From Selaginella moellendorffii (Eukaryota; Plantae; Lycopodiophyta): a DNA stretch of 64,000 bases. Of the stretch, positions 485-41,475 are shown piece by piece. The notes beneath the pieces are model-generated. The model had not been told where the DNA came from, ran no database searches, and saw only the letters and a program-made list of their open reading frames with translations. The stretch spans positions 3,393,137 through 3,457,136 of the forward strand of contig NW_003314267.1 of NCBI RefSeq assembly GCF_000143415.4. Direction: 5' to 3'. Position numbers and translations under genes: made by a program. How positions within the stretch are numbered: the stretch's first letter is position 1; every line of letters begins with the position of its first letter.

Positions 485-3400
485 TCAGTCCAGCCCCGAC
501 TCTAGTAGCTGCTCTTCCAAAAACTTCTTCGCGAGTGATGCTACTCGCTCGGTCCTGTGTTGGCCCCTGCTGCATCCACTGTAAAGCGGCCTGACTGTTT
601 CGTTTTGGAGCCAGAAAGCTCCAACATACTCCACAATGCAGAGCTTGGGATTCATGTCTCGGCTGATTCCCAGGTAGTTCAAAGCCGCTGAAACCGCAGT
701 TCCCCGTGGTAACATATCTTGAACTCCATCGAGAGACTGCACCACGGAGTGGATCCATTGAAACCAGGTGTTCCAAGCCGAGAGCACGAGTTGTTGCAAG
801 TTCTCGACGTTGTCCTGGACGAGCGTCAAGCCAGAGCGCTCGGAATCGAGCTCAAACGAGGCTGCTGCTTTCAAGGCTTCGGACGCTCCTCCCAATAGCT
901 GCCGCAAGGCAATGACTTCGACGTTGGAGTTCTTCGCCACCTTCCAGTTTTCTAGGAGCTCTCTCACTGTGGCAGTGCCTGGAGTCGTCCGGAGCACTTT
1001 GAGTTCGTGCGAGAACACGGGGTTGTCAGCAGCTAGACGTGCCGCCTTGTCGAGAGTCTCACGGTCTTGGAAGCTCTTCAGAGGCCAGCCACAGTTCTGT
1101 CCTCCCCACAAGGACTGGAGCCTGATGTGCTCGAGGATTTTCCGAGCCGCTTCGGAACGCTTGCCGGCATTTTCGAGTAGCTCCGATGCTCGGAGAACGT
1201 TTCCCTTCCTCGCAGCCACTTCTGCAGCTTTCTCGAAGTTGCCAAGGCTGCATGCAAGCTCGATAAGCTCGTCAAGGTACTCCCGTCTTTCCAAGAACGC
1301 AATCTTCCAGTCCGCATCCGACGAGGCTTGCACCGCCTCCATCATCGAGTGAGCGTCTACTTTGCGATGAAAGTACTCGGCAGCGTTCTTCCGAAACTTC
1401 TCCAACGTGTTGGCAGGCACGCTTGGTACTGTCCATTTGCGAATGAAGTCGAGGCCTTCTTTGTACAGTCTTCCCTTGGCACAAGCTTCAAGGCATTTCT
1501 CGTAATGGTTCCCCTCCGCATATACTTGTGAAGCTTCGCTGTGGAGATTTGCGGCCATGTAGCAGTCTCCCGAGAGTTCTAGCTTTGAGCATTGCTTGTA
1601 CAAAAAACCTACACAACAAATCAGTATAAGCACGAGAGAGAGGGAGAAAAGAAAAGAGCTTTATTCATCACAGTACCTGCCCTTTGAAAGTCTTTCATCA
1701 ATCTGAAACACTTTGCTACAGCATCCTTCTTTTCCACGGACTCGTACAGTGCGGCCGCACGTTGTAGGTCCCTTTTTGCAGCACTCTGGTCGACTCTAAG
1801 GAATTTTTCTCCCCTCTCTTGAAATTCCGCAGCTTCAGATAGTTTTGCTCGGTATCTATCGCCTGCTCGTTTGAAGGAAAGCTTTGCCATGTCAAACCGG
1901 CGAGCATTAAACATCTACACAAACCAGCCAATACATTTTTTTAAAGAGTGAATCCACTCCACAGATATTTACCTCAACACCACGTTGGTGCCACTGCTCG
2001 GGGGAGCTTATCTGGTGAATCGAGGATATCAGTGACGCATCCAACGCACCTCTCTTGACAACGTTCAGACTCTTCCAGTAATCAAGCATTGGCCGCTGAT
2101 ATTCCAGGTTCTCGTCGATGATCCACAGCCTCCGTTTAGTCCTCGTGATGGCAACATATAGCTCCTTGAGTTCATTGCACAAAATGCTGGGAAGCTGAGC
2201 GGGTAAACAATTAGCTGGACGGCTTCTACCAAAAACAGAAGAAAGTGTTTTCCACGCTTCAGGGCTTGCCGAGTCAGTGAAGAAGTTAAAGATCAATACA
2301 TCCTGTGTAAGAGTAGCTTAGAGCATGTTAGAAGAAAATAAAGCGTACCTCAAACTCTAATCCTTTACTGTCCTCCACCGTAAGGACGAGGCATCTTGTG
2401 CCGAGTTCCTTTAGCAGCTGCTGCTTCTGGGACTTGTTCCGGACTAGTACGGCTTGATCCGAGCCAAACTCGTAACCGGAGCTGGATCCATGACTGAAAA
2501 ACAAAAAGTTGATAGACGTGCTATCGTCTGGGAGATTCAAAACAACTGGAACTTCGCCGAGTACAGAACTACTTTCCGGCTCGAGCCTGTCGACCCTGAG
2601 AGGGAAGAACCGAAGTATCAGCTCCATAACACTATTTGCAACCTGGACAATGGCGCCCGTTGTCCTGAAATTGTCTATCAGCTGCACGATATCCGGACAC
2701 CTCGCCTCGGCTTCCAGAAACTCTGTATAGAAAACCCGACGTACATCTTCGAACCGGAATTCCACACCTCTAGTGATGGTCTGAGCCGTATCTCCAGCAA
2801 AAATGAAGCCTTCCCGATAATTCGTGCATACGAACTTGAGCAGGCAAACCTGAGCCAGCGTAAAATCTTGCACCTCGTCAATATAGACAAGATCAAGCTT
2901 GTCTCCCTTGAACCCCTCCACCCTGAGCTGCCGGTACAAATGCCAAACATAGTCTGCCATGTCGTAGTCGTCGTTTTCTTTCTTGAGTTTCTCGTAGTGG
3001 AGATAGAGGTCGTAGATCGTGTCCCGTTGCCCCTCATCGAACACCGAAATACGCTGTGATGCCAAGTTGATGAAAGCCTCGCGAGAAAGCCTTCCGTCCG
3101 GACAGTGAAGGGACTCAGCGCTTCCCTTGATGTGAGACACGATAGCTGCGTAGACATCTGATGCATCGTACGTCTTCCTCAAAGAGGCCTTCATCATACG
3201 CGGCCAGTAAACCGACACAAAGACGTCGAAGTCCACTTCCCGATCTTCAAGTGTTCTGCTTCGGAAAGGCCTCGACACAGTTCCATGAACCATATCCAAA
3301 AGCTTTTTGAGGGTCAAGACGAGAGGAAAGGCCTCAGGTTGGATGTTGATGAAACTGTCTGGAATGCTGCCTTGAAACTCTTCGTCAAGCATCACATCTT

Positions 3401-6400
3401 CGTTGCAGGTGTCCCCAAAAGCAGCAGTATAAGCATCACTTCGTAGTAAAGACCTGAAATGTAAGAAAAACTGGTGACGCTGATGAGTAACAGGAGTTCG
3501 TCGCATACCTTTTAAACTTTTCGAGGTAGTTCTTGACTGCGAAACACAGCCTCTGGCTAACGGTAATGAACGCTTAACGCAAGCACGTCCCCTCGGCGCT
3601 ATCAAAACTCCCGTTATCACCAAAACCACACCTTGATATGCGATGGAGCTGCTCAATGCGCATCATCTTAACACTGATAACCGTGGTTTTGCCTGTGCCC
3701 GACCTTCCGATAACAAAAGCCGACGAAGAAGACAACATCAGCTCGGTCTGTGGATGACTTAGAGGGAATGGCAGCTCGATTTCTGTACCGCCACTGTCTG
3801 TCAGAACGTAGTTCGCAATTCCAGATGACTCTGAATAGAACTTCAGTAGAGATAGATTCTCTGAAACTTTGGGACCACGCTGACTAATTGGAGGCGCTGC
3901 ATTGCCGTCGTCGATGACTTTCTGGACAACATCTCCGCTCCATACTTCCGGAACAACGATTCTACCGCAAACGGACGTCTTTGTCGTCATAGTTCGACAG
4001 CGTTCCACGTAATCCAATGAGTAAGTCGAGCTGACAGTATTCAATCGTTGGACAGTTCGCTGTAGTCCTTGAACGCCCACCACATCACATAGCTCGATGG
4101 CCTGAGACCTTCTATTGCTCGTCAAAACCACTCTCCAGACTAGAAGCAAACCGTTCATGCGAAACACGTGAATATCCTCTGAGAGTGTCAGCGGCATCGC
4201 AGAGTTAAACTCAGGCCAGTGACCTCTAGCAAGTCCCAGGACAAATCTCGTGCAGCCATTTCTGAAGGACGCCGATTGACGAGCGTAACTGGTCTTGAAC
4301 TCCTTGCTGAAGAAGACCTGCAAAGAGAAAAACATGCTCAGGTAGGCAAGAAAACCGATGAGGACACTCACCTTCCAGATACAGTTTTCGAGAAGAGAAC
4401 TGTTAATCAGGATATCATAAAACTGGTCCACTTTGCCTCCAACACGCTTCTCCAGCTCTGGAACGTCGGTCGAGTCCACAAAGCAATCTCTGCTTTTTGC
4501 ATTCTGAACTAAATCCCTCCAAATGGTCTCGTTCTTAGCCAAGGTATGCTCGTTACCAACAATGCAAAGACAGTATCTGCATGGGAAAAACTAAGTAGAG
4601 GCTCAAACATTATGGCAACCACCTGGCTCGAGTTATTGAAACATTCAGACGTCGATGATCTTTCAGAAAGCCCAAATCTCCGGAAGGGTTCGATCTGACA
4701 GTCGACAAAATAACTACGTCCATTTCACGACCTTGAAATCCGTCGACAGTATTGGCCTCGACCTTGAAAGAAAACGAAGCATGTTGTATGCGACTTCTTA
4801 GTGCAGTAACTTGTGCCTTGTAAAAGGAGATAACTCCCACCTCAAGGTTGCTGCAGTTACGTTTCTCTGGAGAATCACATCTTAGAAATTTCAACCAGCT
4901 TCATTCTGTACCTTTTTGGAGTTTCTCCAATAGAAACATGATGACTTCAATTTCTGTGGGATTTTCCAAGCTCCCCTCTTTGGCAGTGCATTCCGAACTG
5001 TTCGCATGGATAAATATATATGGGCCGTATAAGAGCGAGCGGAACGCTGCGCCGTAAGAACTCACTGTTACATTCGGGCCATCTTGGATTTTTCGCTTGT
5101 AGAATTCATAGTTTGAGAACTGGCAAATAGATGGGTGCATGCGGTACTGAACATTAAGCATAATATTCGGGTGGTCCAGCGCATGGAGCCTCTGGAACAA
5201 GCTCCTTCCATAACCGGACATTTTAGACTTCTGTAAACACATACAGGCATCGAATCAGTACGAAGTTTGCACGGTTAAAAGTACCTCGCTAAGAACAGTG
5301 GGTGGTAACTGCCGGTGGTCTCCAACAAGGACGAGTTGCTTTAGACAAGAAAGGCCCATAATGATAGCTGTTTCCGCTTCGATAGCTTGAGAAGCCTCGT
5401 CAAGAACAGCTACGTCAAAGAGCACCGCCGAATTTTGCACCAACGGCATAGCAGCGCAAGACAGCGTGCAAAACACCATGGTCGAATGCCTGACGAGCTG
5501 CCTTCTGATGAAGCTTGTCATGCGGTCAGCGCTCACTTGAAGGCTCTGAAGGAGGACAGCAAGTTTGTCAAGGTTGTTCTTGATGCTCCTGTTGACACCA
5601 AAGCAAGCAATAGCATCAATAAGATCGCTTATCTTGGCGAGGAGGCTTTTCACTTTGACGATTTTAGCCGACTGAACGAGTGTGGTCGGCAGGTCCGAAA
5701 GAGCCTGAACCATCTGCTGTTCAAGACTGGCGAACGTTCTTCGTACGACGTCCGAGAAGTTTTGAGAGGCCTCCATATTCAGAAAGTCGACCATGGAAGA
5801 CGCTTCTGATTTGCAGCAGCTTAAGGTCGACGATATCCTGTTCAAGCGATATGGAAGAAACACTTCGGACAGCAGCTTGTCACTAACACCAGTCAGCCTC
5901 GTCTCATTTCCTATGAGCAGAATATCGTTGGAGCCAGAGTCGTTTGTCTTCAGAAACCGAGTGACTAGTTCCTGAACGGCCATGTTTGTAGGAGCGCAAA
6001 CCAATACACGCCTTCCAGAGCTCCGTAGAACAGAAAGAAGTGCGGCTAGCACCGACGTTTTCCCTGTACCCGGAGGTCCCTGTATCAGCCTCACGTACGG
6101 CTTTTGATTTTTCTCAAGCGCCAAAACGGTGCTGGACACGGCCCTTGATTGAAAATCGTTCAGATGCGAGCATCTTGTTCCAGAAAGAAATCCTTTGTCA
6201 GCATCATCCACCCAAAGTGCCTATAAACGAAAACATGAAGTTAGCGAAAAATACGTTACTTCAGTGACAGAAAAATTCTCTAGGTACCTGCTGCAGCACC
6301 TCGTCGAAAATCGGGAACCGATTTTCATCGGCAAACAGCGGCCGCTGCAACGCATTCCAAATCCTCGAAGCTGATACCAGGGACTCCAAGCCAATGACGT

Positions 6401-7011
6401 ACCAGGGTCTCTCCGGATCAGTCAGAGCGTTCTCCATCTGGGATGTGGAGTATATCTCGGCCTCCCAAAAGCCCGTTGGAACATCAAAGCCGGTCAGTAG
6501 AACCAGCGCGTGCATCTTTCCCGAAGCTTGCACGTCCTTCGCGGAGGAAGTTGGGCTTGTCGCGAGTAGGACAACATCCATTGGCTTGAAAGAGGAGTTG
6601 TCTTTACCGTCCACCTTGAGCCAGACCCGTCGAAGCGTTTCGTCTGTGTCTTCCATCTTCACTCGTACCATAGCCCAGCCATCTTTTTTAATCCGTGAAA
6701 GCCCGCGGCTTAATCCTTCTCGCACTTCATCGAGCAGCGGCAACTTGAAGCTCGCGAGGTACTGCCTCAAAGAGGTAAACTCGAGAGGAATTTTTCTCAC
6801 CTGAAACACCATCTTCCTTGTCAAGCAAAGTGCAAGCTCAAAGAAAGAAGAGAAAAAAAAAAAAACAACTCACCTGAATGAGCGAGCCATTCTCGATGTT
6901 GTCCAGCGACCACTTGAGCACGCGTGATGAAAGCGTCTCAAACCTCGACGATTCATCGGCGGCAGAAGTGGATGCTTCGATCGATTTCCCAGTCGAAGAT
7001 TGCACCTGCAT
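485..7011 (-). CDS. Multi-exon double SF1 helicase: UPF1/SEN1-like module + UvrD/REP-like module + TPR-like helical region (TRANK1-like architecture)
   Basis: Module 1 motifs: GPPGTGKT, DEASQ, GDHRQLPP, QYRMHP, VDGFQGRE, RRLNVSITRAR. Module 2 motifs: GRSGTGKT, DEVQD, GDTAQ, NFRT, SKGLEF, LYVAITRTK. Ala/Lys/Glu-rich helical repeats follow. Short GT-AG introns join the ORFs; ATG at 7011. Confidence 0.88.
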
Positions 7012-7399
7012 TTTGCACCACCCGAACGAGAATCCGCAGGAAGGAAGAACTACAAACACGAAGAAGAAATCGTATGGAGTGTATAGATCACGGAATCAAG
7101 AACTTACATCCGCGAGCAGAGCGTTCGAAATCGTTAAATGCTCCACATTTAAGTGGCGTGAAAGCACGAGGCCCTGGAATTTCCAATCACATCAAAGATC
7201 ACATCCAGCGATAGCGCAATCTCTTGCATTGCGCTCCTGGCCACTTACAAGCATCTCGTCTCCTCCGCTTCTTCGTGCGCCTTCGCCCGCCTCCTCCTCC
7301 ATTGCACAAAGCCCTAAACCCTTCAATGTGATGCAATATTCACAGTAAAATAATTCAATTTTTGAAATATTTTAGAAACTTCTACGTTCTTATATATAT

Positions 7400-7615
7400 A
7401 ATTTATAAACACATTTATAATTTTTTAGATTTTCTTAAACACTTCTTAATGTATTCTAACTTATTCTACTAGGTTGATATGCATTAACAAAAATTTTTTT
7501 TTAATAAATTATACACATTTTTATAATTATAAATTTCCATTTGATCAATTGGATTGATAAATGTGAATAACACTACTATTAAGCAACCAAACAACATATA
7601 ACAAATTATTTTCTC
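7400..7615. repeat. AT-rich dispersed repeat, copy 1
   Basis: Shares GTTGATATGC, ATAATTATAAA, TTTGATCAATT and ACAAATTATT with 10030-10235, and in reverse complement with 57430-57598. Confidence 0.7.
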
Positions 7616-8014
7616 TTTTTATACTTTACTTTTATTTAGATTAGAAAAAAGAAATGTTTGGTTTACTAAAAAGGCAAACATAATTTACCAAGGAAAAAAG
7701 TTTGATGTGGGGCAGGATCTTCTGGATCTGCTTCTCCATCTCCATCTCCATCTCCATGACCCGCTTCTCATCGAAGTCCAAGCCAAAAACAACGTGTCTA
7801 TACTGAAAGGAGACTTCAACCACACTTATAAATGCAATATTTCTCAGGAGATGTTGAACCATCGCCTAATCACACCTTCTTAGTTCTTTCTAGGTGTTTC
7901 TGAAGTCTATAAATTGCTGTCCAATCTTTTGTGTGTGTGTCTCGAATTGTTCCTCAAAGTCCATTGCCCACTTCTAGTTGAGCCCTCTTCCCCTTCTTTA
8001 TCTATCCACTTCTA

Positions 8015-9280
8015 ATGGCAGCCACCGTCACTCTTGTTGGCAATGGTTATGTGTACCCAAACGACAGTTTCGGTTCTATTTCTAATGATGGCCTTGAAGG
8101 ATGGACCGATGCCACTGGATCAACCCGTGTCTTCTTTTTGCCACAGAAAACTGGATGGATCTCTGTTTCAATCCAGGCAAGATCAGTTGACAACACTAAC
8201 ACCTTGCGCTTAAGCCTCGATGGTAGTCCCAATGCTGCACACGACGTAGTTTTGCCCATGTCCTCTGATTTCAAAACTTATACAGTGGGAACTTATACCA
8301 TTTTCAGCGCAGAGTATCACTATCTGGAAATACGTGCAGTCACCCAAAACTCAACCTACCTTCCTGAAGTGCAAGCGCTGATCATCTCTGGTTCTGCTGC
8401 CGAAGGCCTCAGGTATAACAAGAGCTCCAATCGCGCTGCACCCTCAACGCATCTCTGGTACAACACAGATGCTATCCAGGGGGCTATCACTGGGTTCTAC
8501 ACTGAATTCTATGTAAAGCAAGCCGAAGATCCCGTAAACTCCTACTACATGACGAATGGTTTTGGAGATGGCTACTTCGGCATTCAGGTAAGTTCCAGTC
8601 TATACCATGGTGACCACTCTCTAATACTGCTATCTATATGTTCCTAGGTGATCTCTCCGACTGAAAGGAGAGTATTGTTTTCAGTATGGAGCAATTATAA
8701 TACTGAAGACCCAGGGCAGATCCCCGATGACTACAAAGTGAAGCTGGTGAAGAAAGGCACTGATGTGATTTCAGGAGAATTTGGTAATGAAGGGTCGGGT
8801 GCACAGAGCTACATCCAATATATGTGGAATACTGACACCGTTTACAGAGGGCTTTTGACGGCTGAAGCGGATGGCAGCGACAACACTATATTTTCAGGTT
8901 ACTTCTTTTTGCCGGAGTCGGGCTGGAAGCTGATAGCTCGATGGAACAAGCCAAAGACTGGAGCTCGCTTGTTGACAGGGCTTTACTCCTTCGTGGAAAA
9001 CTTTCGAAGCAATGGAAACGACTACTTCAGAGCTCACTACGGCAACCAGTGGGCTTATGGTGAGGGTGGATGGGTGCAGCTGACCAAGGCTACATTCGAC
9101 ACGACCGCCGGTGAAGGCGACTATCAGCGATATGATTATGGCGCTGGGGCAGAGGGTAATTGGATGTATATGTTCAGTGGTGGATTTAGGCAGACCAACA
9201 ATGTGAAGGTTGGAGATGTCATAGAAAGGAGCGTTGGTCCTGATCCCGACGTGGACTTCGCAATCTTGGATGCTCTCTAA
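8015..9280 (+). CDS. DUF5077+DUF3472 family protein, copy A (exons 8015-8587 and 8648-9280)
   Basis: Motifs PSTHLWY, YYMTNGFGDGYFGIQV, ERRVLFSVWS, GEFGNEGSGAQSY, SFVENF and GNQW are typical of bacterial DUF3472 proteins. One phase-0 GT-AG intron of 60 nt. Confidence 0.85.
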
Positions 9281-9412
9281 AGCCTACATGCCAGAGCTCA
9301 AAGGCTTTGCTTGGACTGTACCTTTACAAATAACATGGCTGGCGCTAGATGTTTCGATCCATGCCGATCCATCGCACCTATCATAATCTCCTGGCAATCT
9401 ACCTTCAGTTTT

Positions 9413-9670
9413 CTAATGTAATTATATTAATGCAATAATAAGTGGTTCGAACCCCAATTGTATGCTTGCCAGTTGTCGCACACACCGGCGATGGCAAGCT
9501 CCAAGGTACCACAGCCGAGACCAAAGCTGGAAACAAGCAGGCAAACGAAAGAAACTTCGTTTCCCTAAGAACAAATTAGAGTTCTAGACATATATAATCA
9601 CTTTAAATCGCAACAGCAGAGGCTTTCCAACGCTAGAATGAGCGAAGTACCAGCTCGATGGAAAGACAAC
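9413..9670 (+). pseudogene. Heavily deleted duplicate of the tRNA-Leu flank, tRNA T-arm and subtilase 5' exons
   Basis: TAATGTAATTAT matches 11932. GGTTCGAACCCCA matches 12019. CACACCGGCGATGGC...GGAAACAAGCAGGCAA matches 14844-14907. ATGAGCGAAGTACCAGCTCGATGGAAAG matches 15493-15520. Confidence 0.75.
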
Positions 9671-9675
9671 AATCA

Positions 9676-9912
9676 AGACCAGCTATCTTTTTCAATCCGT
9701 GAGAGGCTGCCGAGGTAAAGAGGTAAACTAGAGAGGGATTTTTTTCCAGCTGGAGCACATTGTCATTGTCAAACGAAGTGCAAGCTCAAAAAAAAGAAGA
9801 GAAAAATAGAACTCACTGAAAGAGCGACCCATTCTCAATGAGCACTTGAGCACGTGATGAAAGCGCCAAACCTCGATGAGTCATTGGATGCTTCGATTGT
9901 GCATTTTGCATC
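9676..9912 (-). pseudogene. Heavily deleted duplicate of the helicase gene 5' end
   Basis: Colinear matches to 6671-7017, including AATCCGTGA, AAAGAGGTAAACT, AAGTGCAAGCTCAAA, CACTTGAGCACG, GGATGCTTCGAT and TGCATTTTGCA. Confidence 0.8.
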
Positions 9913-10029
9913 TAATGTAACACAATAAACTGTTTTTGATTTACCTAAGCAAAAGATGGTAGTGAATATATTTAAAATATGCTTGAATATTCAGGATATT
10001 ATACCATCTAATGGTTGTTATTTATTTAG

Positions 10030-10235
10030 ATTAATTTTATATTTATAATTTATAAACTTTTCCCTTTCTAGTATATATTTTTTATTCTATTATCTAATGG
10101 TTGATATGCGATAAAATTAATCTTGTGTTTATAAATTACAAACATGCTTATAATTATAAAATTTATTTGATCAATTAAATTAATAAATAAAAATAACATT
10201 ACTAGCTATGTTTTCTTTAGCAAACAAATTATTAT
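10030..10235. repeat. AT-rich dispersed repeat, copy 2
   Basis: Close match to the reverse complement of 57430-57598 and to 7400-7615. Confidence 0.7.
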
Positions 10236-10255
10236 CTGCGGTGGTGTTTTAGTTT

Positions 10256-11518
10256 TTAGAGAGCATCCAATTTTTTCAGGTCCACATCAGGACCAGCGCT
10301 CCTTTGTATGATATCTCCAGGTTTCACATTGTTCGTCTGCTTAAATCCACCACTATACATATACATCCAAATGCCTTCTGCCCCAGCGCCATAATCATAT
10401 CGCTGATGCTTCTCTTCACTGGCGGTCGTGGTGAATCCGGCCTTGGTCAGCTGCACCCATCCATCCTTACCATAAGCCCACTGGTTGCCAAAGTGAGCCT
10501 TGAAGTAGTCGTTTCCATTGCTTGAAAAGTTCTCCACAAAGGAATAAAGCCCTGTCAACAAGAGAGCTCCAGTCTTTGGTTTGTTCCATCGAGCTATGAG
10601 CTTCCAGCCCGACTCCGGCATATAGAAGTAACCTGAAAATATGGTGTTGTCGCTACCAGAAGCTTCAGCCTTGACAAGGCATCTGTAAACGGTGTCAGTT
10701 TTCCACATATATTTGAAGTAGCTCTGTGCACCCGACCCTTCGTTACCAAATTCTCCTGAAATCACATCACTTCCTTTTTTCACCAGCTTCACTTTGTAGT
10801 CTTCGGGGATCTCCTCTGGTTTCTGAGTATCATAGTTGCTCCATATTGAAAATAATACTCTCCTTTCAGTCGGCGAGTTCACCTATGGATAATAAGAGTA
10901 TTAGGAGGTGGATAATGCAATTAAACTGGAACTTACCTGTATACCAAAGTAGCCACCTCCAAAACCATTCGTCATATAGTAGGAGTGAAGGGGATCTTCG
11001 CCTTGCTTGACATAGATTTCACTGTAGAACCAAGTGATACCCCCCTCGATACCCTCTGTTTTGTACCAAAGATGCGTTGAGGGTGCACCGCGGAAGGAGC
11101 TCTTGTTATACTTGAGGCCTTCGGCGGCAGAACCAGAGATGACCAGTGCTTGCACATCTGGAAGGTAGGTCGAGTTTTTGGTGACTGCCCGTATCTCCAG
11201 ATAGTGATACCCTGAGCTGGAAATGGTGTATGTTCCTACTGCATAAGTTTGGAAATCAGAGGACTTGGGCAGGACTACGTCGTGTGCAGCACTGGCACTA
11301 CCATCGAGACTTAAACGCAAAGTGTTAGTATTACCAACTGATCTTGCCTTGATTGAAACAGAAATCGACCCAGTTTTCTGTGGCCAGAAGTAGACACGGG
11401 TGGATCCAGTGATATCTGTCCATGCTCCAAGCCCGGCTTCAGAAATAGAACCGAAACTATTGGACCCCTCTCTTGGGTACACATAAGCATTGCCAACAAT
11501 TGTGAGGGTGGCTGCCAT
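10256..11518 (-). CDS. DUF5077+DUF3472 family protein, copy B (exons 11518-10937 and 10882-10256)
   Basis: Full-length paralog of 8015-9280 with the same intron position (GIQ|V); intron is 54 nt. Confidence 0.85.
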
Positions 11519-11956
11519 CTTAGAACAGATTAAGAAGGAAAAGAATGCTCAAAAAAGAGTGCTCAGCTATTGATAGTAGAAATGGGCTTCAAATTTATGG
11601 ACTTCTATACTGTTCATTTTGCGGACTGGGTAGGACCAGCTGGTGGGAGGCCACCATCATCATCAACAAACACGTTGTAAACAAATTGATGTGGATTTGG
11701 AATGCGTTACAGCTGGAATGCTTATCCTGGTATGTTTTTGATATGGACTTTGAACTGAATTTTTTTTCTTTCCCGACACATGATGCGAATAAAACGAGAT
11801 TCTCGCACCTGAACGATCGTGTACTGGTTTGCGACATGGCAATTGTTCTGAAGACAACTACCGTCTAACCTTCTGGAGGAGTTTGAACATGGCTTTTGTA
11901 AAATTTACAGATTAGCCTGCCTTAAGCCCTTTAATGTAATTATGCTAAGGCGATAA

Positions 11957-12040
11957 GCTGGTTTGCCCGAGTGGTCTAAGGGGGGTGACTTAAGATCACC
12001 TGCATTTCAATGCGCGTGGGTTCGAACCCCACAGCCAGCA
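11957..12040 (+). tRNA. tRNA-Leu (anticodon TAA)
   Basis: Acceptor stem GCTGGTT/AGCCAGC; anticodon arm GGTGA-CTTAAGA-TCACC; long variable arm; T arm GTGGG-TTCGAAC-CCCAC. Confidence 0.95.
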
Positions 12041-12232
12041 AATTATAGTTTTGGAATCTGTATCTCAACTAGAAACTTTATGAGCGCTAGATTAGAAATA
12101 GTAGTATGACTAAAAATGTAAAATGTCGTATACACGCAGCAATTTTGTTACATTTTCTCCGATACTCTGGAATTCCTTGGCGAGCACTTCAAAAGAAACT
12201 GATTCCATCCCACAAGATTCACACACCACAAA

Positions 12233-13736
<1,504 letters not shown>

Positions 13737-13824
13737 AAGATTTTCTCCCGTCCAAATTTGACGGCCGAGATTGCCGATCTGGACGGCTCAGATGTCGAAT
13801 ATATAAATGTGCCTAAAATTAAGA

Positions 13825-13868
13825 GGCCTGGTGCTAGAAGGTCCCAGGTTCGAGGCCTGCATAGGCCA
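13825..13868 (+). pseudogene. tRNA-Ile relic with internal deletions
   Basis: GGCCT..GGTGCTA..GAAGGTCCCAGGTTCGAGGCCTGCATAGGCCA resembles plant tRNA-Ile(AAT) lacking the D arm and part of the anticodon arm. Confidence 0.6.
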
Positions 13869-14124
13869 ATTTCCAATCCGGTTTGACACTCTTCAGTAAC
13901 ACTTTCCTTGGATCTTTTCAAAGCGTTTCGTCTCCTCGTACGTGCCAGTCAGGATGTTTGAAAGGAGAATCTAACATCCTAAGAGAAACCAAATTACAAC
14001 TCAATTAGACATATCTCAAGCAACTGTGAGGAGCTCAGGCTCTCAGAGAGCCCTCAGCAGCTGTGCAATGTTTGAGTTTATAAAATGATCATGCACGAGC
14101 TCATAACAAAGAATTTATCATGTA

Positions 14125-14175
14125 GCAACCTTGGCGTTATTAGCACCACGCTCTGACCAGCTGAGATAATAGGCC
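14125..14175 (-). pseudogene. 3'-truncated tRNA-Ile(AAT) relic
   Basis: Minus strand reads GGCCTATTATCTCAGCTGGTCAGAGCGTGGTGCTAATAACGCCAAGGTTGC, then no T loop or 3' acceptor strand. Confidence 0.75.
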
Positions 14176-14765
14176 TCTTACAGAAAATTGTCTTCCTTGA
14201 ACCGCTGGAAATCAAATCGACTTTCTAGCGAAGCTGGATGGCAGAAACGTTGGCGACTCGCGTTTGGACGAGAGCTGGATCGTCTCTTGGAGATGTCTCG
14301 GTCGCTGCCGCTTAAATGCTTATAAGAAAGAAGCCTTGGTTTTTAGAACTTTCCTTGAGAGAACGATGGTTTTCGGGCCATCATTTCTACTTTACTTCCA
14401 TTCTGCGGAAAAATATCTCACCACTCGTATACAACAGTTGACGACGTGCGTACTTTTCCCTGAGACTGAGAAAAAAATAAGATTGGTCAGTTGCGACAAA
14501 TCACACAAGAGAATGGTAGCTTTCACCTCTAGTATTGGAAGCTTTTGAAGGCGGTGTGCGTGCTTCTCCCTGCCATCTCGTCCCTAGTGTATAAGTCAAT
14601 AAATAATACGTAACTAAAGACCAGAGGGATTACAACACCTTAATTCCTACGTTCGTGTTAAGCGACACTCCATCCATTGGAAACTCCATCGTCCGTTTTG
14701 TCATCCTGCCGGACAAAAGCGCTTTAAAAAGAGTTCGCAGATTCGCAGATTCACTCACCACAGAC

Positions 14766-17691
14766 ATGGACTCCTCCCACGGAGCCATCCTCGTCGCGTG
14801 CTTGCTACTGGCAGCGGTTGCAAACCAAAGTGATGCTTATTTCCACACCGGCGATGGCGGGATCCAAGGTGCCAGAAGCGAGCTGAGAGCTGGAAACAAG
14901 CAGGCAAGTTTAAGATGACTCGTAAGAAAGTAGAAACTTATTACCTTTCGTTTTTTTCTTTAATCATTCCAGAAATATGTTGTATACACCGGAGGGAAGA
15001 GAGAGGATGTGGATCCTGCAACAGTTGTTTCATCGCTCGCGAGCATGCTTGCAGGAATCGTCGGAAGCGACGATGAAGCCACAGCTTCTATGGGATTCAC
15101 CTACAAGAAGGCGTTCACAGGATTCTCAGCATGGCTTACTGAAGACCAGGCCGAAACTCTTTCAGGTGATGAATCAAATTTACCTCGAGTGAAGCTCTCA
15201 TTGGTTTGACGTGTTGCAAAACAGCTACTCCGGGCGTTGTCAAGGTCTTCCCAAACAGAATGCTGCAACTCCAGACAACGCACTCGTGGGATTTCGTTGG
15301 AACGCCGAACGTAACAGTTCCTTCCAAGAATGAATCCAAAACGCTGCCCGCAGCAGCTGATGTTATCGTTGGAGTTCTAGACACAGGTAATCAATCAGCT
15401 TAAGTCGGCCATGATATCTTTTCAAACGCTTACTTGTGAGCTATAAATCAACAGGTGTCTGGCCCGAATCCAAGAGCTTTTCCGATGCTGGGATGAGCGA
15501 AGTACCAGCGCGATGGAAAGGAACCTGTGACAACAAAGGCGTCACCAATGCATCAGTGATCATCAACTGCAACAAGTAAAAGAAAAGTTCAAGCTCACCT
15601 TTTTCAAAAAAAGATCTATAACGTGTTCATCAGGAAGTTGATTGGAGCTCGCAACTACTTGACCGATGGCGAGTTCAAAAACGCGAGGGACGACGCCGGG
15701 CACGGAACACACACAACTTCCACCATCGGCGGAGCTCTCGTTCCTCAAGTGAGTGAGTTTGGACTGGGAGCCGGAACAGCGAGAGGAGGATTTCCAGGTG
15801 CCAGAGTCGCAATGTACAGAGTTTGTTCCGAAGCAGGTTGTGCCAGCGACGCCATCCTTGCTGCATTCGACGATGCCATCGATGACGGCGTAGATATCTT
15901 ATCGTTGTCTCTCGGAGGATTACCTTTAGCTTATGACGAGGACCCCATTGCGATCGGTTCGTTCCACGCCATAGAAAGGAAAATCTTGGTATCATGCGCG
16001 GGAGGAAACTCCGGGCCGGCTGCATCCTCTGTGTCCAATGGTGCACCTTGGATTCTCACGGTCGCTGCAAGCACTATAGACAGACATTTTTCAGTAGACA
16101 TCAAACTCGGCAACGATAAAACTCTACAGGTAAGAAAGAACTCTCTTTTGTCTTAAGCAAGATCATGCCTTTTTGTCTTTCACAGGGCACAGCTCTCAAC
16201 TTCGAGAACATCACATCCGCTTCTTTGATCTTGGGTAAAGATGCAAGCTTAAGTTCTGCAAATTCCACACAAGCAAGGTTACGTAGTGTCTTCTTTCTTG
16301 AAAGTAAACTGACATTTTACCTCCACAGTCTTTGTCTTGTGACGGTTCTGGATCCGGCAAAAGTAAAAGGAAAGATTATTGTGTGCGAATTTGATCCTTT
16401 GGTGATCCCGACAATCATACTCTTAAAAAGCCTCAACAACTGGGGAGCTGCTGGAGTGATCCTCGGGAATGATGTGATCGCGGATATAGTACGATACTTC
16501 CCTCTGCCAGGAGCTTTCATCAAGAAAGCAGCGTTGAAAGATCTGCTTGCCTACACGAGTTCAAGGTGCTTGTTTAGTACGATCCTTATGAACCATGAGA
16601 AACTAACGTTGCAAAAACGCCTTGCAGCAACTCGACAGCAGCCACGATTTTTCCAACCAAAACAGTCCTCGATGTTGAACCTGCACCCACAGTCGCTGGC
16701 TTTTCATCAAGAGGACCTCACATAGAAAACCTGGACATTCTCAAGGTATATATACGTACCTCACCCCTCGGTTTCTTTTGGTAACAGTTTTTGCTTTTGG
16801 CAGCCCGATATCACCGCACCGGGTGTAAATATTTTAGCAGCATGGTCCGCCGCAGTACCAGTCTTCCTCGAAGATTTAGACGCCACTAAGCCCGTGTTCT
16901 CCGACTTTAACATCATTTCTGGAACGTCCATGGCATGCCCTCACGCTACTGGAGCTGCGGCGTATGTCAAGTCGATCCATCCTGACTGGAGTCCAGCGGC
17001 AATCAAGTCAGCACTAATGACCACAGGTAAATCAAAGGGAAAAAAAAAACAAGAGAGAAAAAAAATTCATACCTCAGTGCGTGATCTTCTTCCAGCAAAA
17101 AGAAAAATTTCCATACCTCGAGGCTGTTCTAAACTGTGTGATCTTCTTCTTCTTCCAGCGAAATCCGTTGACAACGAAAAGAAGCCTTTGAAAGACTTTG
17201 ATGGAAGCGACGCAACTCCATTCGCGTTTGGAGCCGGCCAGATAAGTCCTCTCGACGCGGCAAATCCAGGACTCGTCTATGACACCAGCGTGGAGGAGTA
17301 TCTCCTCCATCTCTGCGCGAGTGGATACAACGCCACGCAAATCGCCGTGATCTCTGGTCGCACCGTAAGGTGTCCCGAATCGCCTGGAGCACCAAAGTTA
17401 AACTATCCGTCAGTGACAATCCCGGAGCTCAAGAACCAGACCAGCGTGGTAAGAACAGTGACCAATGTAGGAGCTCCAAAATCCGTGTACCGAGCAATCG
17501 GATCCCCGCCTCTCGGAATCGAGCTGATCGTATCGCCTGGAACGCTGGCGTTCAATGCCACCGGACAGAAGATCGCCTACACCCTGACGTTCGTACCTCT
17601 TCAAAATCTATCCAAGAAATGGGCATTTGGAGAGCTCATCTGGACGAGCGATTCCATTTCCGTGAGAAGCCCTCTTGCTGTGAAGGGCTGA
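14766..17691 (+). CDS. Subtilisin-like serine protease (S8A: signal peptide, I9 prodomain, PA, FnIII)
   Basis: Signal peptide MDSSHGAILVACLLLAAVANQSDA. Catalytic motifs VGVLDTG, HGTHT and SGTSMACPH. First intron is GC-AG (14904-14972). Confidence 0.95.
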
Positions 17692-17861
17692 AGAACCCTA
17701 AAGATTTTCCCCCTCTAAATTTGACGGCTGAGATTGTCCGATCTCGACGGCTGAGATTTAAAGTGACGTTTTGCTCTGAATGGTCCAGATTTCAAGGCAT
17801 TTCGAATATGCTGTTATACAAAATCTTTAAAATCGCGCGAAGGAAGTTAAAGAGAAGCGTT

Positions 17862-20652
17862 TTAGGCCGCAGCGACTGTTTGAGCTTTGGAGGTGATTTG
17901 CGTTTGGACATGCTGTGGCACGATCTCGAATTTGGAGAGCTGCATCGAGTAGCTTGCTCGTCCCTTTGTCATTCCTCGGAGATTACTCACGTACTGGAAC
18001 ATCTCCGCCAGTGGAACAAACGCATCCACAACCTGGAACCAAAGCAAACCGAGCTTAGATTCACTCTCACCAGAGAAGAAAAGCTATGAAGCGAAAGATT
18101 CGTGAGAAGAACCAGCCTTACCTTCAAGCCACCGGGCTTCTCTCCCAAGCTGTTGATCTGGCCTCTCCTCGAGTTTAAGTCTCCGATCACGTCTCCCATA
18201 TGCTCCTCCGGCGTCACCACTTCCACCTTCATCACTGGTTCCAGAAGCTTGGGCCCCGCTTTGGGAATCCCCTCCCTGAAAGCTCCTCGAGCTGCGAGCT
18301 GGAACGCCAGGATACTGGAGTCGACGTCGTGGTAAGAGCCATCGACCAAGGTTGCTCGAAAGTCCACCACCGGGTAGCCTGCTAGGATCCCGTTGCTGAT
18401 GCTGTCCTCGAGGCCTTTCACCACCCCCGGAACGTATTCCTTGGGAACGGTTCCACCTTTGATCTCGCTCTTGAATTCGTATCCGCTGCCAGGCTCCAGT
18501 GGCTCGAACTTAATCACAACCTCTGCGAACTGGCCTTGTCCTCCTGACTGTTTCTTGTGTACGTACTTCACCTCAGTTGGCTTGGAGATACTCTCGCGAT
18601 AGTTCACTTGTGGAGCACCCACGTTAGCTTCCACCTGAATCAGAAAAGACTTTAGAACCACAATCTTGTAGCGAATTCACGAAGCAAACCTTGAACTCCC
18701 GTTTCAGCCTGTCAACGATGATTTCCAGATGGAGCTCTCCCATGCCTTCGATGACTGTTTGGTTTGTTTCGTCGTCTCTGGAGAAATGGAACGACGGATC
18801 CTCTTGCGCAAGCTTGATAAGGCCAGTTGACATCTTGTCGACATCAGCCTTCGTCTTTGGTTCTATTGCCACCTTGATGACGGGATCAGGGAAGTCCATT
18901 CTTTCCAGGATCACTGGCTTCTCTGGATCACACAGCGTCTCCCCTGTGATCGTGTCCTTCAAACCAGCGAGAGCTACGATGTCTCCAGTCACTGCAACCT
19001 TGACATCTTCCCGTGAGTTTGCGTGCATCTGGAGCAGACGCCCGATCCTCTCCTTCTTGTTCTTGTTCGCATTGAGGGCGTAAGATCCGGCCGTGAGAAC
19101 GCCGGAGTAGACCCGCATGAACGTCAGTGCTCCAACAAAAGGATCTGTCATCACCTTGAAGGCCAGCCCCGAGAATGGTTCTTTGTCACATGGTTTTCGC
19201 TCGAGAACGACCTCCGGATCGTCCATGTCAGTCCCTTTGATCGAAGGCAACTCCACTGGGGAAGGAAGAAACTCTATCACCGCATCCAGCAGAGGCTGCA
19301 CACCTTTGTTCTTGAATGCCGATCCGCAAAGAACTGGGACAAAGCTGTTTGAGATCGTTCCCTGCCGTATAAGTCTCTTGATGGTTGCTTCATCCGGCTC
19401 CACTCCTTCCAAGTACTGCTCCATAACTTCACCGTCTTGTTCCACCACCAGCTCGACAAGCTGTGCCCTGTAATCTTTCGCGTCCTTTGCCAAGTTGTCG
19501 GGAATCTCCTCGTAGCTAAACTTCGCACCTAGCTGTTCTCCGCTCCACAAAATAGCCTTCATGGTAATCAAATCGACCACCCCTTTGAATGTATCCTCTG
19601 CTCCTATCGGAAGCTGTAGTACCAGCGGTTTGGCTCCTAAGTTGCTGACGATCATGTCCCTCGTCCGGAAAAAATTGGCTCCCATCCTATCCATCTTATT
19701 TACAAAGCAGATCCTCGGCACCCCGTATTTGTCAGCCTGCCTCCACACGGTCTCTGACTGTGGCTCCACACCGGCAACGCTGTCGAAGAGGCAAATAGCC
19801 CCGTCCAAAACTCTGAGAGCTCGTTCCACCTCAAGAGTAAAGTCTACGTGCCCCGGAGTGTCAATGATGTTGATCCGATGGTTCTTCCACACGGCGGTTG
19901 TGGCAGCGGAAGTTATAGTAATGCCTCGTTCTCTTTCCTGTTCCATCCAGTCCATGGTCGCATTTCCTTCGTGAACTTCGCCGATCTTGTAGTTCTTGCC
20001 GGTGTAGTAAAGAATGCGCTCGGTTGTTGTAGTCTTGCCAGCGTCGATGTGAGCCATGATTCCAATGTTTCGGTAGTCCTCGAGTGGAAACTGTCGTGTA
20101 TCTGTGTGAGAAAATAAATTGGATTGTAGGCAACCAGAAAAAGTATGAAGTGTATGAAAAGAAAAAATTTCTTGATAGAAGCAAGCAAAAAAAAAAAAAA
20201 CTGTGGAACATTCTTTTCGTGCTATAGCTACGTAAATTTGCAAGAACACAAAGAAAATTCTTCGTGATAGAGGATATGACTATGATGCTCGCGTAAAATC
20301 TATAAACCAAGATGCCAATGAATTGCAACTCATAGCACGACCGACCATATCCAAAGGAACCAAGAAAAATCTCGATGACAAAAATCCATAGCTAGCTATG
20401 TAGAATCACAAAAGACTTACCGGAATCAGCCGCCATACACACAATCCCACGCCTCGCAGCATTGCAAGCCCGCGCATTCTTGGCCGCGCCATTCTGCCCT
20501 GAAAATCTGAGCCCTGGAAAGCCCCGGAGGGCCACAAACGGCGCTCTCGATTTGGCGCCGCAGCATAATCTCGCTTGCGAGCTCCCGGCGACGGATGAGC
20601 AAGATGGGGACTTCGCTGCTGGAAGAGTAGCGGCCGCTTGCGCCATCGCCAT
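17862..20652 (-). CDS. fusA: Plastid translation elongation factor G
   Basis: [40 protein letters not shown]. An Ala/Ser/Arg-rich transit-peptide exon lies at 20652-20421. Confidence 0.96.
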
Positions 20653-41211: not shown

Positions 41212-41285
41212 GCTGGAATAGCTCAGTTGGTCAGAGCGTGTGGCTGTTAACCACAAGGTCGGAGGTTCGAGCCCTCCTTCTAGCG
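41212..41285 (+). tRNA. tRNA-Asn (anticodon GTT)
   Basis: GCTGGAA/TTCTAGC acceptor stem, TGTGG-CTGTTAA-CCACA anticodon arm, GGAGG-TTCGAGC-CCTCC T arm. Confidence 0.97.
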
Positions 41286-41475
41286 CATTGAAGTTAAACA
41301 TTTTTTATTCTGGTTATGTTTAACAACAAATAATTTAGTGAATTGAGATTAACAACTTTTCTTTTAGTCTTGCAGTTACACAAAAATTTCAGCAGTATCG
41401 CGTATAAGCCAAGTAACACTTGTAACAGACTAAGAAATTTTCCACCAAAGGCTGGAAGTTTGGAAGCACAAAACC

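Follow-up and report, generated by a model that had tools for sequence, protein, structure and literature searches.

Two DUF5077/DUF3472 genes of probable Chitinophaga-like origin in the spikemoss Selaginella moellendorffii

Introduction

The stretch of the Selaginella moellendorffii genome that is studied here (64,000 nt of contig NW_003314267.1, below called the window) raises the question of how two genes of an apparently bacterial type came to lie close together in a plant and what their products might do there. The two genes, A and B, each encode a DUF5077 domain followed by a DUF3472 domain. An initial annotation, made from the letters of the sequence, had proposed that a horizontally acquired gene gained an intron, was duplicated and was then retained. 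The transfer of DUF3472/DUF5077 genes from bacteria to eukaryotes is already known, as is the transfer of bacterial genes to early land plants. What is new is this well-resolved Selaginella case and, beyond the initial annotation, a link to a recently characterised enzyme class and evidence for the gene in another lineage. The explanation that we consider best overall, and hold to be likely, is that A and B are genuine plant genes of Chitinophaga-like origin, with the history and the hydrolase mechanism that are proposed below.

Gene models and domain organization

Genes A (+ strand, 8015–9280) and B (− strand, 11518–10256) are convergent, and their spliced products consist of 401 and 402 amino acids, respectively. 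Their features, in coordinates of the window, are the following.

8015–8587, + strand: gene A exon 1; DUF5077, which resembles carbohydrate-binding modules (CBM) of families 6 and 35, and the start of DUF3472 (Pfam)
8588–8647, + strand: gene A intron; 60 nt, GT..AG, phase 0, with an in-frame TAG at its end (from contigs that show splicing)
8648–9280, + strand: gene A exon 2; bulk of DUF3472 with Glu239 (FGNEGSG) and Glu308 (FVENF) (Pfam, E = 6e-62)
10937–11518, − strand: gene B exon 1; DUF5077 and the start of DUF3472 (Pfam)
10883–10936, − strand: gene B intron; 54 nt, GT..AG, phase 0, matching the gene A intron in its codon boundary
10256–10882, − strand: gene B exon 2; DUF3472 with Glu242 and Glu311 (Pfam, E = 1e-66)
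7902–7915, + strand: TATA-like promoter motif of gene A, GAAGTCTATAAATT, unique on the + strand of the window
11592–11605, − strand: TATA-like promoter motif of gene B, GAAGTCCATAAATT, one base different from its gene A counterpart

The two open convergent frames of about 400 codons that had been noticed initially correspond to annotated proteins. The spliced translation of gene A is identical in every letter to SELMODRAFT_407288 (XP_002965689.1; P0164), and that of gene B to SELMODRAFT_407289 (XP_002966062.1; P0163). In both proteins DUF5077 (PF16871) precedes DUF3472/BPSS1860 (PF11958), each domain scores above the Pfam gathering score and the precomputed annotation agrees. The DUF5077 matches have E values of 2e-20 (A) and 7e-23 (B), corresponding to 73.5 and 81.5 bits against a cut-off of 24.6, while those of DUF3472 (6e-62 and 1e-66) correspond to 210 and 225 bits against a cut-off of 24.8. 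Pfam finds an additional weak CBM35/CBM6 match in exon 1 of gene B. A scan with the NCBIfam models returned no matching model.

The two genes are arranged as inverted repeats and are 79% identical in protein and 87% identical in DNA. The inverted duplication extends from about 110 nt upstream through the coding region with its intron, and so includes the promoter. The conserved TATA-like motif of the initial annotation, GAAGTCYATAAATT, is indeed found once on each strand of the window, about 100 nt (A) and 74 nt (B) before the ATG, and a weak similarity between the 5′ untranslated regions continues beyond it. An in-frame stop lies 11–12 codons before each ATG, and there is no other ATG within the transcribed leader. 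Both plant proteins lack a signal or leader peptide and begin at the first strand of the domain. The introns of A and B have their first 12 nt in common, together with a CTAATACT block. Because both paralogs carry the intron at the same boundary and with a common start, its gain is placed by the sequences before the A/B duplication. A scan of the locus for sigma-70 promoters and terminators gave fewer matches than shuffled sequences, as expected for a eukaryotic locus.

Transcription, splicing and haplotypes

Four public sequencing runs were compared with positions 7800–11750 of the window. The RNA nature of three of these (X2, X6 and X9) was only guessed; what speaks for it is that in them a GT..AG intron that DNA keeps is removed exactly. 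The 60-nt intron of gene A is skipped precisely at its GT..AG ends in contigs of these three RNA-like runs, which come from three studies, while it is kept in the DNA run X1. Two of the RNA-like runs, X2 and X6, also contain the spliced junction of gene B. A contig with a length of 1389 nt corresponds to the complete spliced mRNA of gene A and covers 7955–9403. The RNA-like contigs of gene A start at 7926–7961, which is 12–47 nt downstream of the promoter motif, and those of gene B cover 10246 to beyond 11530, past which 27–48 further allelic letters follow. A and B are genuine, transcribed and spliced nuclear genes of S. moellendorffii.

The flanking genes are of plant type, comprising a giant superfamily 1 (SF1) helicase, a subtilase with an fn3_6 domain, an elongation factor G (EF-G) and a pentatricopeptide repeat (PPR) protein. 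The second haplotype is represented by scaffold GL377582.1 of the v1 assembly (L001), which is collinear with window positions 3737–18260 at 95–98% identity and carries an intact allele of gene B (P0305, SELMODRAFT_441509, 404 amino acids). The gene A allele on this scaffold (L001:8060–8972, equivalent to window 7643–9344) has a 10-bp and an 11-bp deletion in addition to a larger loss.

8396–9187, no strand assigned: stretch of gene A that is missing from GL377582.1; 792 bp, comprising the entire DUF3472 domain (blastn of L001 against the window)

The truncated allele leaves an open reading frame (ORF) of 156 amino acids at L001:8140–8610, without DUF3472.

Bacterial relatives and phylogeny

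A profile search and a single-protein search against 5.8 billion proteins gave 4367 hits, of which the best 120 were inspected. After the paralog, the nearest matches among these 120 are unnamed metagenomic proteins (57–58% identity), and then proteins of Chitinophaga species at 53–56% (C. niastensis, C. nivalis, C. jiangningensis, C. dinghuensis, C. caeni, Chitinophaga sp. CF118 and others). Behind Chitinophaga follow Puia, Hanamia, Ginsengibacter, Flavitalea and Mucilaginibacter. This is in agreement with a scan of 185,579 prokaryotic species genomes, where Chitinophaga comes out on top with 53–54% and all others remain at or below 45%. Other named plants occur neither in the best 120 of the 4367 hits nor among short fragments, in databases whose coverage of lycophyte, fern and bryophyte transcriptomes is doubtful.

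In a FastTree tree of 222 rows the Selaginella pair lies in a 13-row Chitinophaga clade (support 97), itself inside a 145-row clade (97) in which nearly all members are Chitinophagaceae and a few are Sphingobacteriaceae. A careful IQ-TREE analysis of 72 rows places the pair as sister to P0225 plus (P0226 plus Chitinophaga sp. CF118) with support 92/68, inside a Chitinophagaceae clade with support 99/97. With 55 rows, the pair falls in a 16-tip clade at the level of Chitinophaga (85/99). Bacteria are the neighbours of the pair in every tree. Within the reach of the databases searched, the horizontal acquisition that was proposed initially thus stands: the pair is nested in Chitinophagaceae, and no vertical spread through green plants is seen. 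A bacterium-to-plant direction and Chitinophagaceae as the donor family are well supported by these comparisons, and at this level A and B are shown to descend from one gene of a Chitinophaga-like soil bacterium (Bacteroidota).

Some further markers were considered and set aside. Indels shared with the Chitinophaga sp. CF118 subgroup have the same states in Puia and are therefore ancestral, so that they only exclude the C. niastensis subgroup. Base composition, including GC content at third codon positions (GC3), is uninformative as a sign of foreign origin, host, donor, A and B all having 45–52% GC. Two short DUF3472-only proteins (P0320 and P0380) that were considered as ORFs of single exons are both bacterial, one stemming from a frameshifted long-read contig and the other lying in an operon.

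Changes from the bacterial to the plant gene

The Chitinophaga homologs start with a lipoprotein leader that has a lipobox cysteine and with a linker, together about 43 residues, and the plant proteins begin where these end. In two of the three bacterial contexts examined the homolog lies next to SusC/SusD, with LacI or FecR regulators. These are L003:9417–16128 (Chitinophaga sp. sic0106), which also contains a FecR anti-sigma gene, and L002:3101–8745. Regulators of the FecR type mark host-glycan loci in gut Bacteroides. The plant proteins do not have the hallmarks of Bacteroidota SusC/SusD surface lipoproteins: they have no lipobox leader and plant genes as neighbours.

The intron site reads as an uninterrupted CAG^GTA/GAAC in bacterial DNA (the caret marks the boundary), and the intron would therefore have entered a ready-made proto-splice site. 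An origin of the intron by tandem duplication of flanking exon sequence was considered, but the similarity is not above that of shuffled sequences. In the plant lineage, the lipoprotein leader would have been lost, a spliceosomal intron would have been gained at the pre-existing CAG^GT site and a TATA-type promoter would have been acquired. Later on, the gene would have been duplicated in inverted orientation together with its promoter, at a synonymous divergence (dS) of about 0.25.

Age of the transfer

When exon 2 was used as the sole query, P0318 came up, which is encoded on Logan contig L083 (SRR6920682; 1–1485). The contig encodes a leaderless, eukaryote-like relative that starts with MATQFDSSN and is interrupted by an 81-nt insert exactly between GYFG.. 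and VNS, the site of the Selaginella intron. Over 16 nt at its start, the insert agrees in 14 positions with the gene B intron at the same offset (p = 0.002–0.008, uncorrected for the shared position). The former boundaries no longer have the canonical GT and AG. The frame would be preserved by a GT 4 nt farther inside and an AG 1 nt farther along (GYFGYPINS versus GYFGIQVNS), and the boundaries of the intron may have slid, or this contig may represent a dead copy.

A second Logan contig, L085 (SRR17638753; 1–1853), encodes another leaderless, eukaryote-like relative, P0383, with an uninterrupted GIQVNS at the intron site; it could be either a spliced mRNA or an intronless copy. P0383 is 57–62% identical to the Selaginella proteins and 70% identical to the bacterial P0225, and its synonymous sites are saturated. 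A tree constrained to unite P0383 with the Selaginella genes has a likelihood 2.97 above that of the free search (p = 0.63 in the approximately unbiased, AU, test).

Since a relative with an intron turns up in other sequencing runs, S. moellendorffii is probably not alone in having the gene. A leaderless relative that is interrupted at the same site likewise makes the acquisition probably older than the species. A single acquisition and a single intron gain would then have occurred in an ancestor shared with a deeply diverged organism. That this other host is another Selaginella is a guess.

Selection and retention

Between A and B the ratio of non-synonymous to synonymous substitution rates (dN/dS) is 0.40–0.51, which is below 1, with dS at 0.23–0.27. 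For the alleles of gene B dN/dS is 0.28–0.44. A comparison with 68 relatives, most of them bacterial, gives 57 positions with at least 90% conservation; 55 of these are unchanged in gene B and 54 in gene A. In gene A the near-invariant Asn193 is changed, and its terminal branch is 2.5 times as long as that of gene B. Gene B is the constrained copy and is intact on both haplotypes. The proposal that the duplicated gene was retained thus holds fully for gene B, which is expressed, open, conserved and has dN/dS below 1, but not for gene A, which lacks DUF3472 on the other haplotype.

Predicted structure and proposed function

The AlphaFold (AF2) model is a confident one, with a predicted local distance difference test score (pLDDT) of 96.9 and a predicted template modelling score (pTM) of 0.92. 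Over its full length it matches PDB entry 4QHW (Z = 50.2, template modelling score 0.91, root-mean-square deviation 1.8 Å over 387 residues; E = 1.5e-64, 35–37% identity). Residues 140–400 superpose on HC7 (PDB entries 8PN3, 8PN5 and 8PMU) with Z = 28–29 (best 29.4) and a root-mean-square deviation of 2.4 Å over 239 residues. The next best matches of this part, glutamic peptidases (neprosin, scytalidoglutamic peptidase and YncM/CPAVM1) and glycoside hydrolase family 16 (GH16) glucanases, have Z = 13–14, so that the value for HC7 is twice that of the next unrelated folds. Residues 1–130 match CBM35/CBM6 modules with Z = 14–16.

The family profile A2 matches 8PMU, which is deposited as a 'DUF3472 domain-containing protein', at E = 2.4e-10. 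Residue 200 of the 8PMU chain (FQEDW) aligns with the family-invariant glutamate of F-x-E-N-F, which is Glu308 in A and Glu311 in B. Hence the residue that is changed in the Glu200Ala (E200A) substrate complexes of HC7 is conserved in both plant proteins. Glu131 of HC7 aligns with the only other family-invariant glutamate (FGNEGSG), which is Glu239 in A and Glu242 in B, and we infer from this alignment that Glu131 is the second catalytic residue. The initial annotation had treated DUF3472 as a family of unknown function. This no longer holds in full, because 8PMU, the di-glutamate mucinase HC7, is a DUF3472 protein.

We tentatively propose, with slightly less than an even chance of being right, that each plant protein is a two-domain, CBM-guided di-glutamate hydrolase of a glycoconjugate. 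The N-terminal CBM6/35-like β-sandwich would hold the glycan, while the C-terminal HC7-type β-jelly-roll would cut the glycoconjugate through two glutamates (Glu239 and Glu308 in A; Glu242 and Glu311 in B). The substrate may be a protein with dense O-glycosylation, or else a glycan. As neither a signal peptide nor a transit peptide is present, the plant protein is predicted to reside in the cytosol, where an extracellular or foreign substrate would be met only after cell damage or upon unconventional export. Such a location would fit a defence role better than housekeeping of the cell wall.

Comparison with known systems

BACCAC_02064 of Bacteroides caccae (PDB entries 4QHW and 4QHX) is a structural genomics target labelled 'putative two-domain sugar hydrolase'. 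It has the same two-domain architecture over its full length, but is a secreted bacterial protein with no published activity, whereas the plant proteins have no leader and their genes contain an intron.

A further example of gene transfer of this kind is given by the microbial-type terpene synthases of Selaginella. In these, as in the transfer of the DNA-3-methyladenine glycosylase gene and in the present case, a bacterial gene became fixed in a non-seed plant and has introns and plant regulatory signals. These other transfers are widespread in land plants or concern different families, whereas the present one is so far limited to S. moellendorffii and one further relative. The glycosylase gene was transferred from a bacterium to an early land plant (PMC5570899).

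According to PMC13003899, which attributes the enzyme to Narimatsu et al. (2024, Nat Catal), HC7 comes from Bacillus cereus K8 and is a di-glutamate mucinase, cleaving mucins with Tn and T O-glycans. Its catalytic domain is DUF3472, as in the plant proteins, and the glutamate of the E200A variant and the second invariant glutamate are common to both. HC7 has 659 amino acids and no DUF5077, which the plant proteins do have, and contains other modules including a CBM5 (PMC13003899). Its substrate, mucins with Tn and T O-glycans, is not to be assumed for the plant proteins.

The current Pfam name of PF11958 is taken from BPSS1860, a surface protein of Burkholderia pseudomallei that is needed for attachment and virulence, the mutant attaching at about 10% of the wild-type level (PMC7998038). 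BPSS1860 belongs to the same Pfam family as the plant proteins, but it is displayed on a bacterial surface, has been studied genetically only, has a different domain context and is distant from the Chitinophaga clade.

Centipede venom contains DUF3472/DUF5077 proteins that were acquired from bacteria and whose genes show introns and duplications (Undheim and Jenner 2021, PMC7864903). The family and the kind of event are the same as here, with a bacterial DUF3472 gene entering a eukaryote, gaining introns and being duplicated. The recipient is different and the transfer is a separate one, and the centipede proteins are secreted into venom, while the plant proteins have no signal peptide. The tree in PMC7864903 already includes unnamed Streptophyta tips, and 'Selaginella' is not found in the accessible part of the text supplements of that paper. 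Our literature search with locus tags and UniProt identifiers found no paper naming or discussing the three Selaginella genes, and DUF5077 is mentioned in a single paper among those searched.

Named DUF3472 homologs also occur in ciliates, in a springtail and in a rotifer. In our trees the rotifer sequence (Didymodactylos) groups with bacterial sisters of its own, so the eukaryotic copies do not form one clade, and repeated entries of the family into eukaryotes of soil and fresh water seem to have taken place. Exon 2 of gene A shares 54% identity with the DUF3472 protein of Didymodactylos carnosus, and another such protein is named from the springtail Orchesella cincta (P0001 and P0358). Atlas cluster 2 is 47% eukaryotic, mostly from ciliates, and is labelled 'nematoblast specific protein'.

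Alternative explanations

That the genes are bacterial contamination or a mis-assembly, and no part of the plant genome, would agree with soil bacteria as nearest relatives and with a GC content that does not separate host from donor. We give this explanation virtually no credence. It is refuted by spliceosomal introns that are removed in RNA-like runs and kept in DNA, by plant genes on both sides and by the same arrangement on two diverged haplotype scaffolds with allelic differences; the intact gene B allele on the collinear second scaffold in itself rules contamination out, and neither a bacterial leader nor bacterial neighbours are present. Only marginally more credible is vertical inheritance of an old eukaryotic or plant gene that was lost nearly everywhere, or a transfer from plant to Chitinophaga. 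DUF3472 does occur in scattered eukaryotes (rotifer, springtail, ciliates and centipedes) and the AU tests fail to place the pair deep within the bacterial crown, but the Selaginella pair and the rotifer sequence stand apart in the trees. The pair lies instead inside a radiation of hundreds of Bacteroidota sequences with ancestral lipoprotein leaders, some of them beside SusC/SusD, and no other named plant is found in the best 120 hits. A recent transfer that is private to S. moellendorffii, with L083 and L085 stemming from a separate transfer into another eukaryote, is unlikely, though clearly less so. P0383 is nearer to bacterial P0225 than to the Selaginella proteins and is not sister to the pair in the free careful tree, and the splice-site letters of L083 differ. 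Against this stand the common insertion site with its similar intron start (at the p value given above, before the shared position is allowed for), a leader that was lost at nearly the same point in both and the higher likelihood of the tree that unites P0383 with Selaginella. Two independent gains of a similar intron at one site are unlikely.

As to function, many plant cytosolic defence proteins are lectins, and the proteins encoded by A and B might be glycan-binding, lectin- or adhesin-like rather than enzymes, as BPSS1860 suggests with its attachment phenotype. A CBM-like N-domain joined to a concanavalin A-like jelly-roll fold would suit such a role. We nevertheless find it rather improbable, although of all alternatives it is the one with the best prospects: both family-invariant glutamates and 54–55 of the 57 conserved positions are kept, HC7 as the only biochemically studied member is a hydrolase, and the attachment role of BPSS1860 does not exclude catalysis. 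The genes might also be expressed relics without present function that are being lost, for which the absence of the catalytic domain (792 bp) from gene A on the other haplotype, the long branch of gene A with its changed Asn193 and dN/dS values of 0.4–0.5 can be cited. This too we hold to be unlikely, somewhat more so than a private transfer. Gene B is intact on both haplotypes with its lower dN/dS, about 400 codons are still open after a dS of about 0.25, frame and catalytic motifs are intact despite saturated divergence from P0383, and both genes are transcribed and spliced.

Certain observations nonetheless weigh against our preferred explanation of plant genes that derive from Chitinophaga-like bacteria and encode hydrolases. 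In the AU test, neither a position of the pair as sister to the Chitinophagaceae crown (p = 0.13) nor one as sister to this crown plus its sister group (p = 0.06) is rejected, and the assignment to an exact donor branch within Chitinophagaceae is for this reason only moderate. The protein database lists no Logan source for the two S. moellendorffii proteins themselves, though Logan contigs of this species contain their mRNAs. Transcriptomes of other Selaginella species may therefore be missing from it as well, and little weight can be given to its silence on other lycophytes. At least as a single copy, gene A is dispensable, and a dN/dS of 0.4–0.5 appears rather relaxed. Identity to HC7 is only about 18%, a distance at which substrate specificity is not transferable, and a cytosolic location is odd for an enzyme that acts on O-glycoproteins.

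Neighbourhood of the locus

The exons of the SF1 helicase (AAA_11/AAA_12 and DUF6469) lie at 2328–6824 (− strand) on the left flank, and the protein has 2496 amino acids in the annotation of the other haplotype. Directly past the stop codon of gene B, a highly AT-rich stretch (9912–10307) reaches a contig depth of 400 to 27,000 in run X1, compared with 10–20 around it. It corresponds to a high-copy repeat or a low-complexity element and contains short inverted repeats at 10018–10048 and 10148–10178. A tRNA-Leu(UAA) gene at 11957–12040 lies 439 bp upstream of the start codon of gene B, and a tRNA-Asn(GUU) gene is found at 41212–41286 (both from Rfam and ARAGORN). L001:4251–5498 matches both 12344–13438 (95–98%) and 14803–16109 (83%) of the window, and pieces of the subtilase region also match 12387–13470 at 83–84%; these are diverged local duplicates beside the subtilase gene.

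Implications

Within 3.5 kb, the locus shows together the donor group, how an intron was gained and the leader lost, the promoter, the duplication and a deletion that segregates. With it, a plant joins the eukaryotes that have taken up DUF3472 (centipedes, rotifer, springtail and ciliates), which are mostly dwellers of soil and water films beside Bacteroidota.

A more far-reaching scenario, which we consider improbable, is that a spikemoss lineage has long kept a bacterial di-glutamate cutter of O-glycoproteins, stored without a leader in the cytosol as a weapon that would be freed on wounding. It would be directed, for instance, at the gut lining of herbivores, which is mucin-like, or at fungal and oomycete glycoprotein walls. 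If true, this would parallel the independent recruitment of the DUF3472 family into centipede venom.

A DUF3472 member was recently shown to represent a new class of glycoprotein-cutting enzymes, and the plant copies make the function concretely and cheaply testable. They could reveal the role of a widespread bacterial family outside the gut, and why eukaryotes keep borrowing it.

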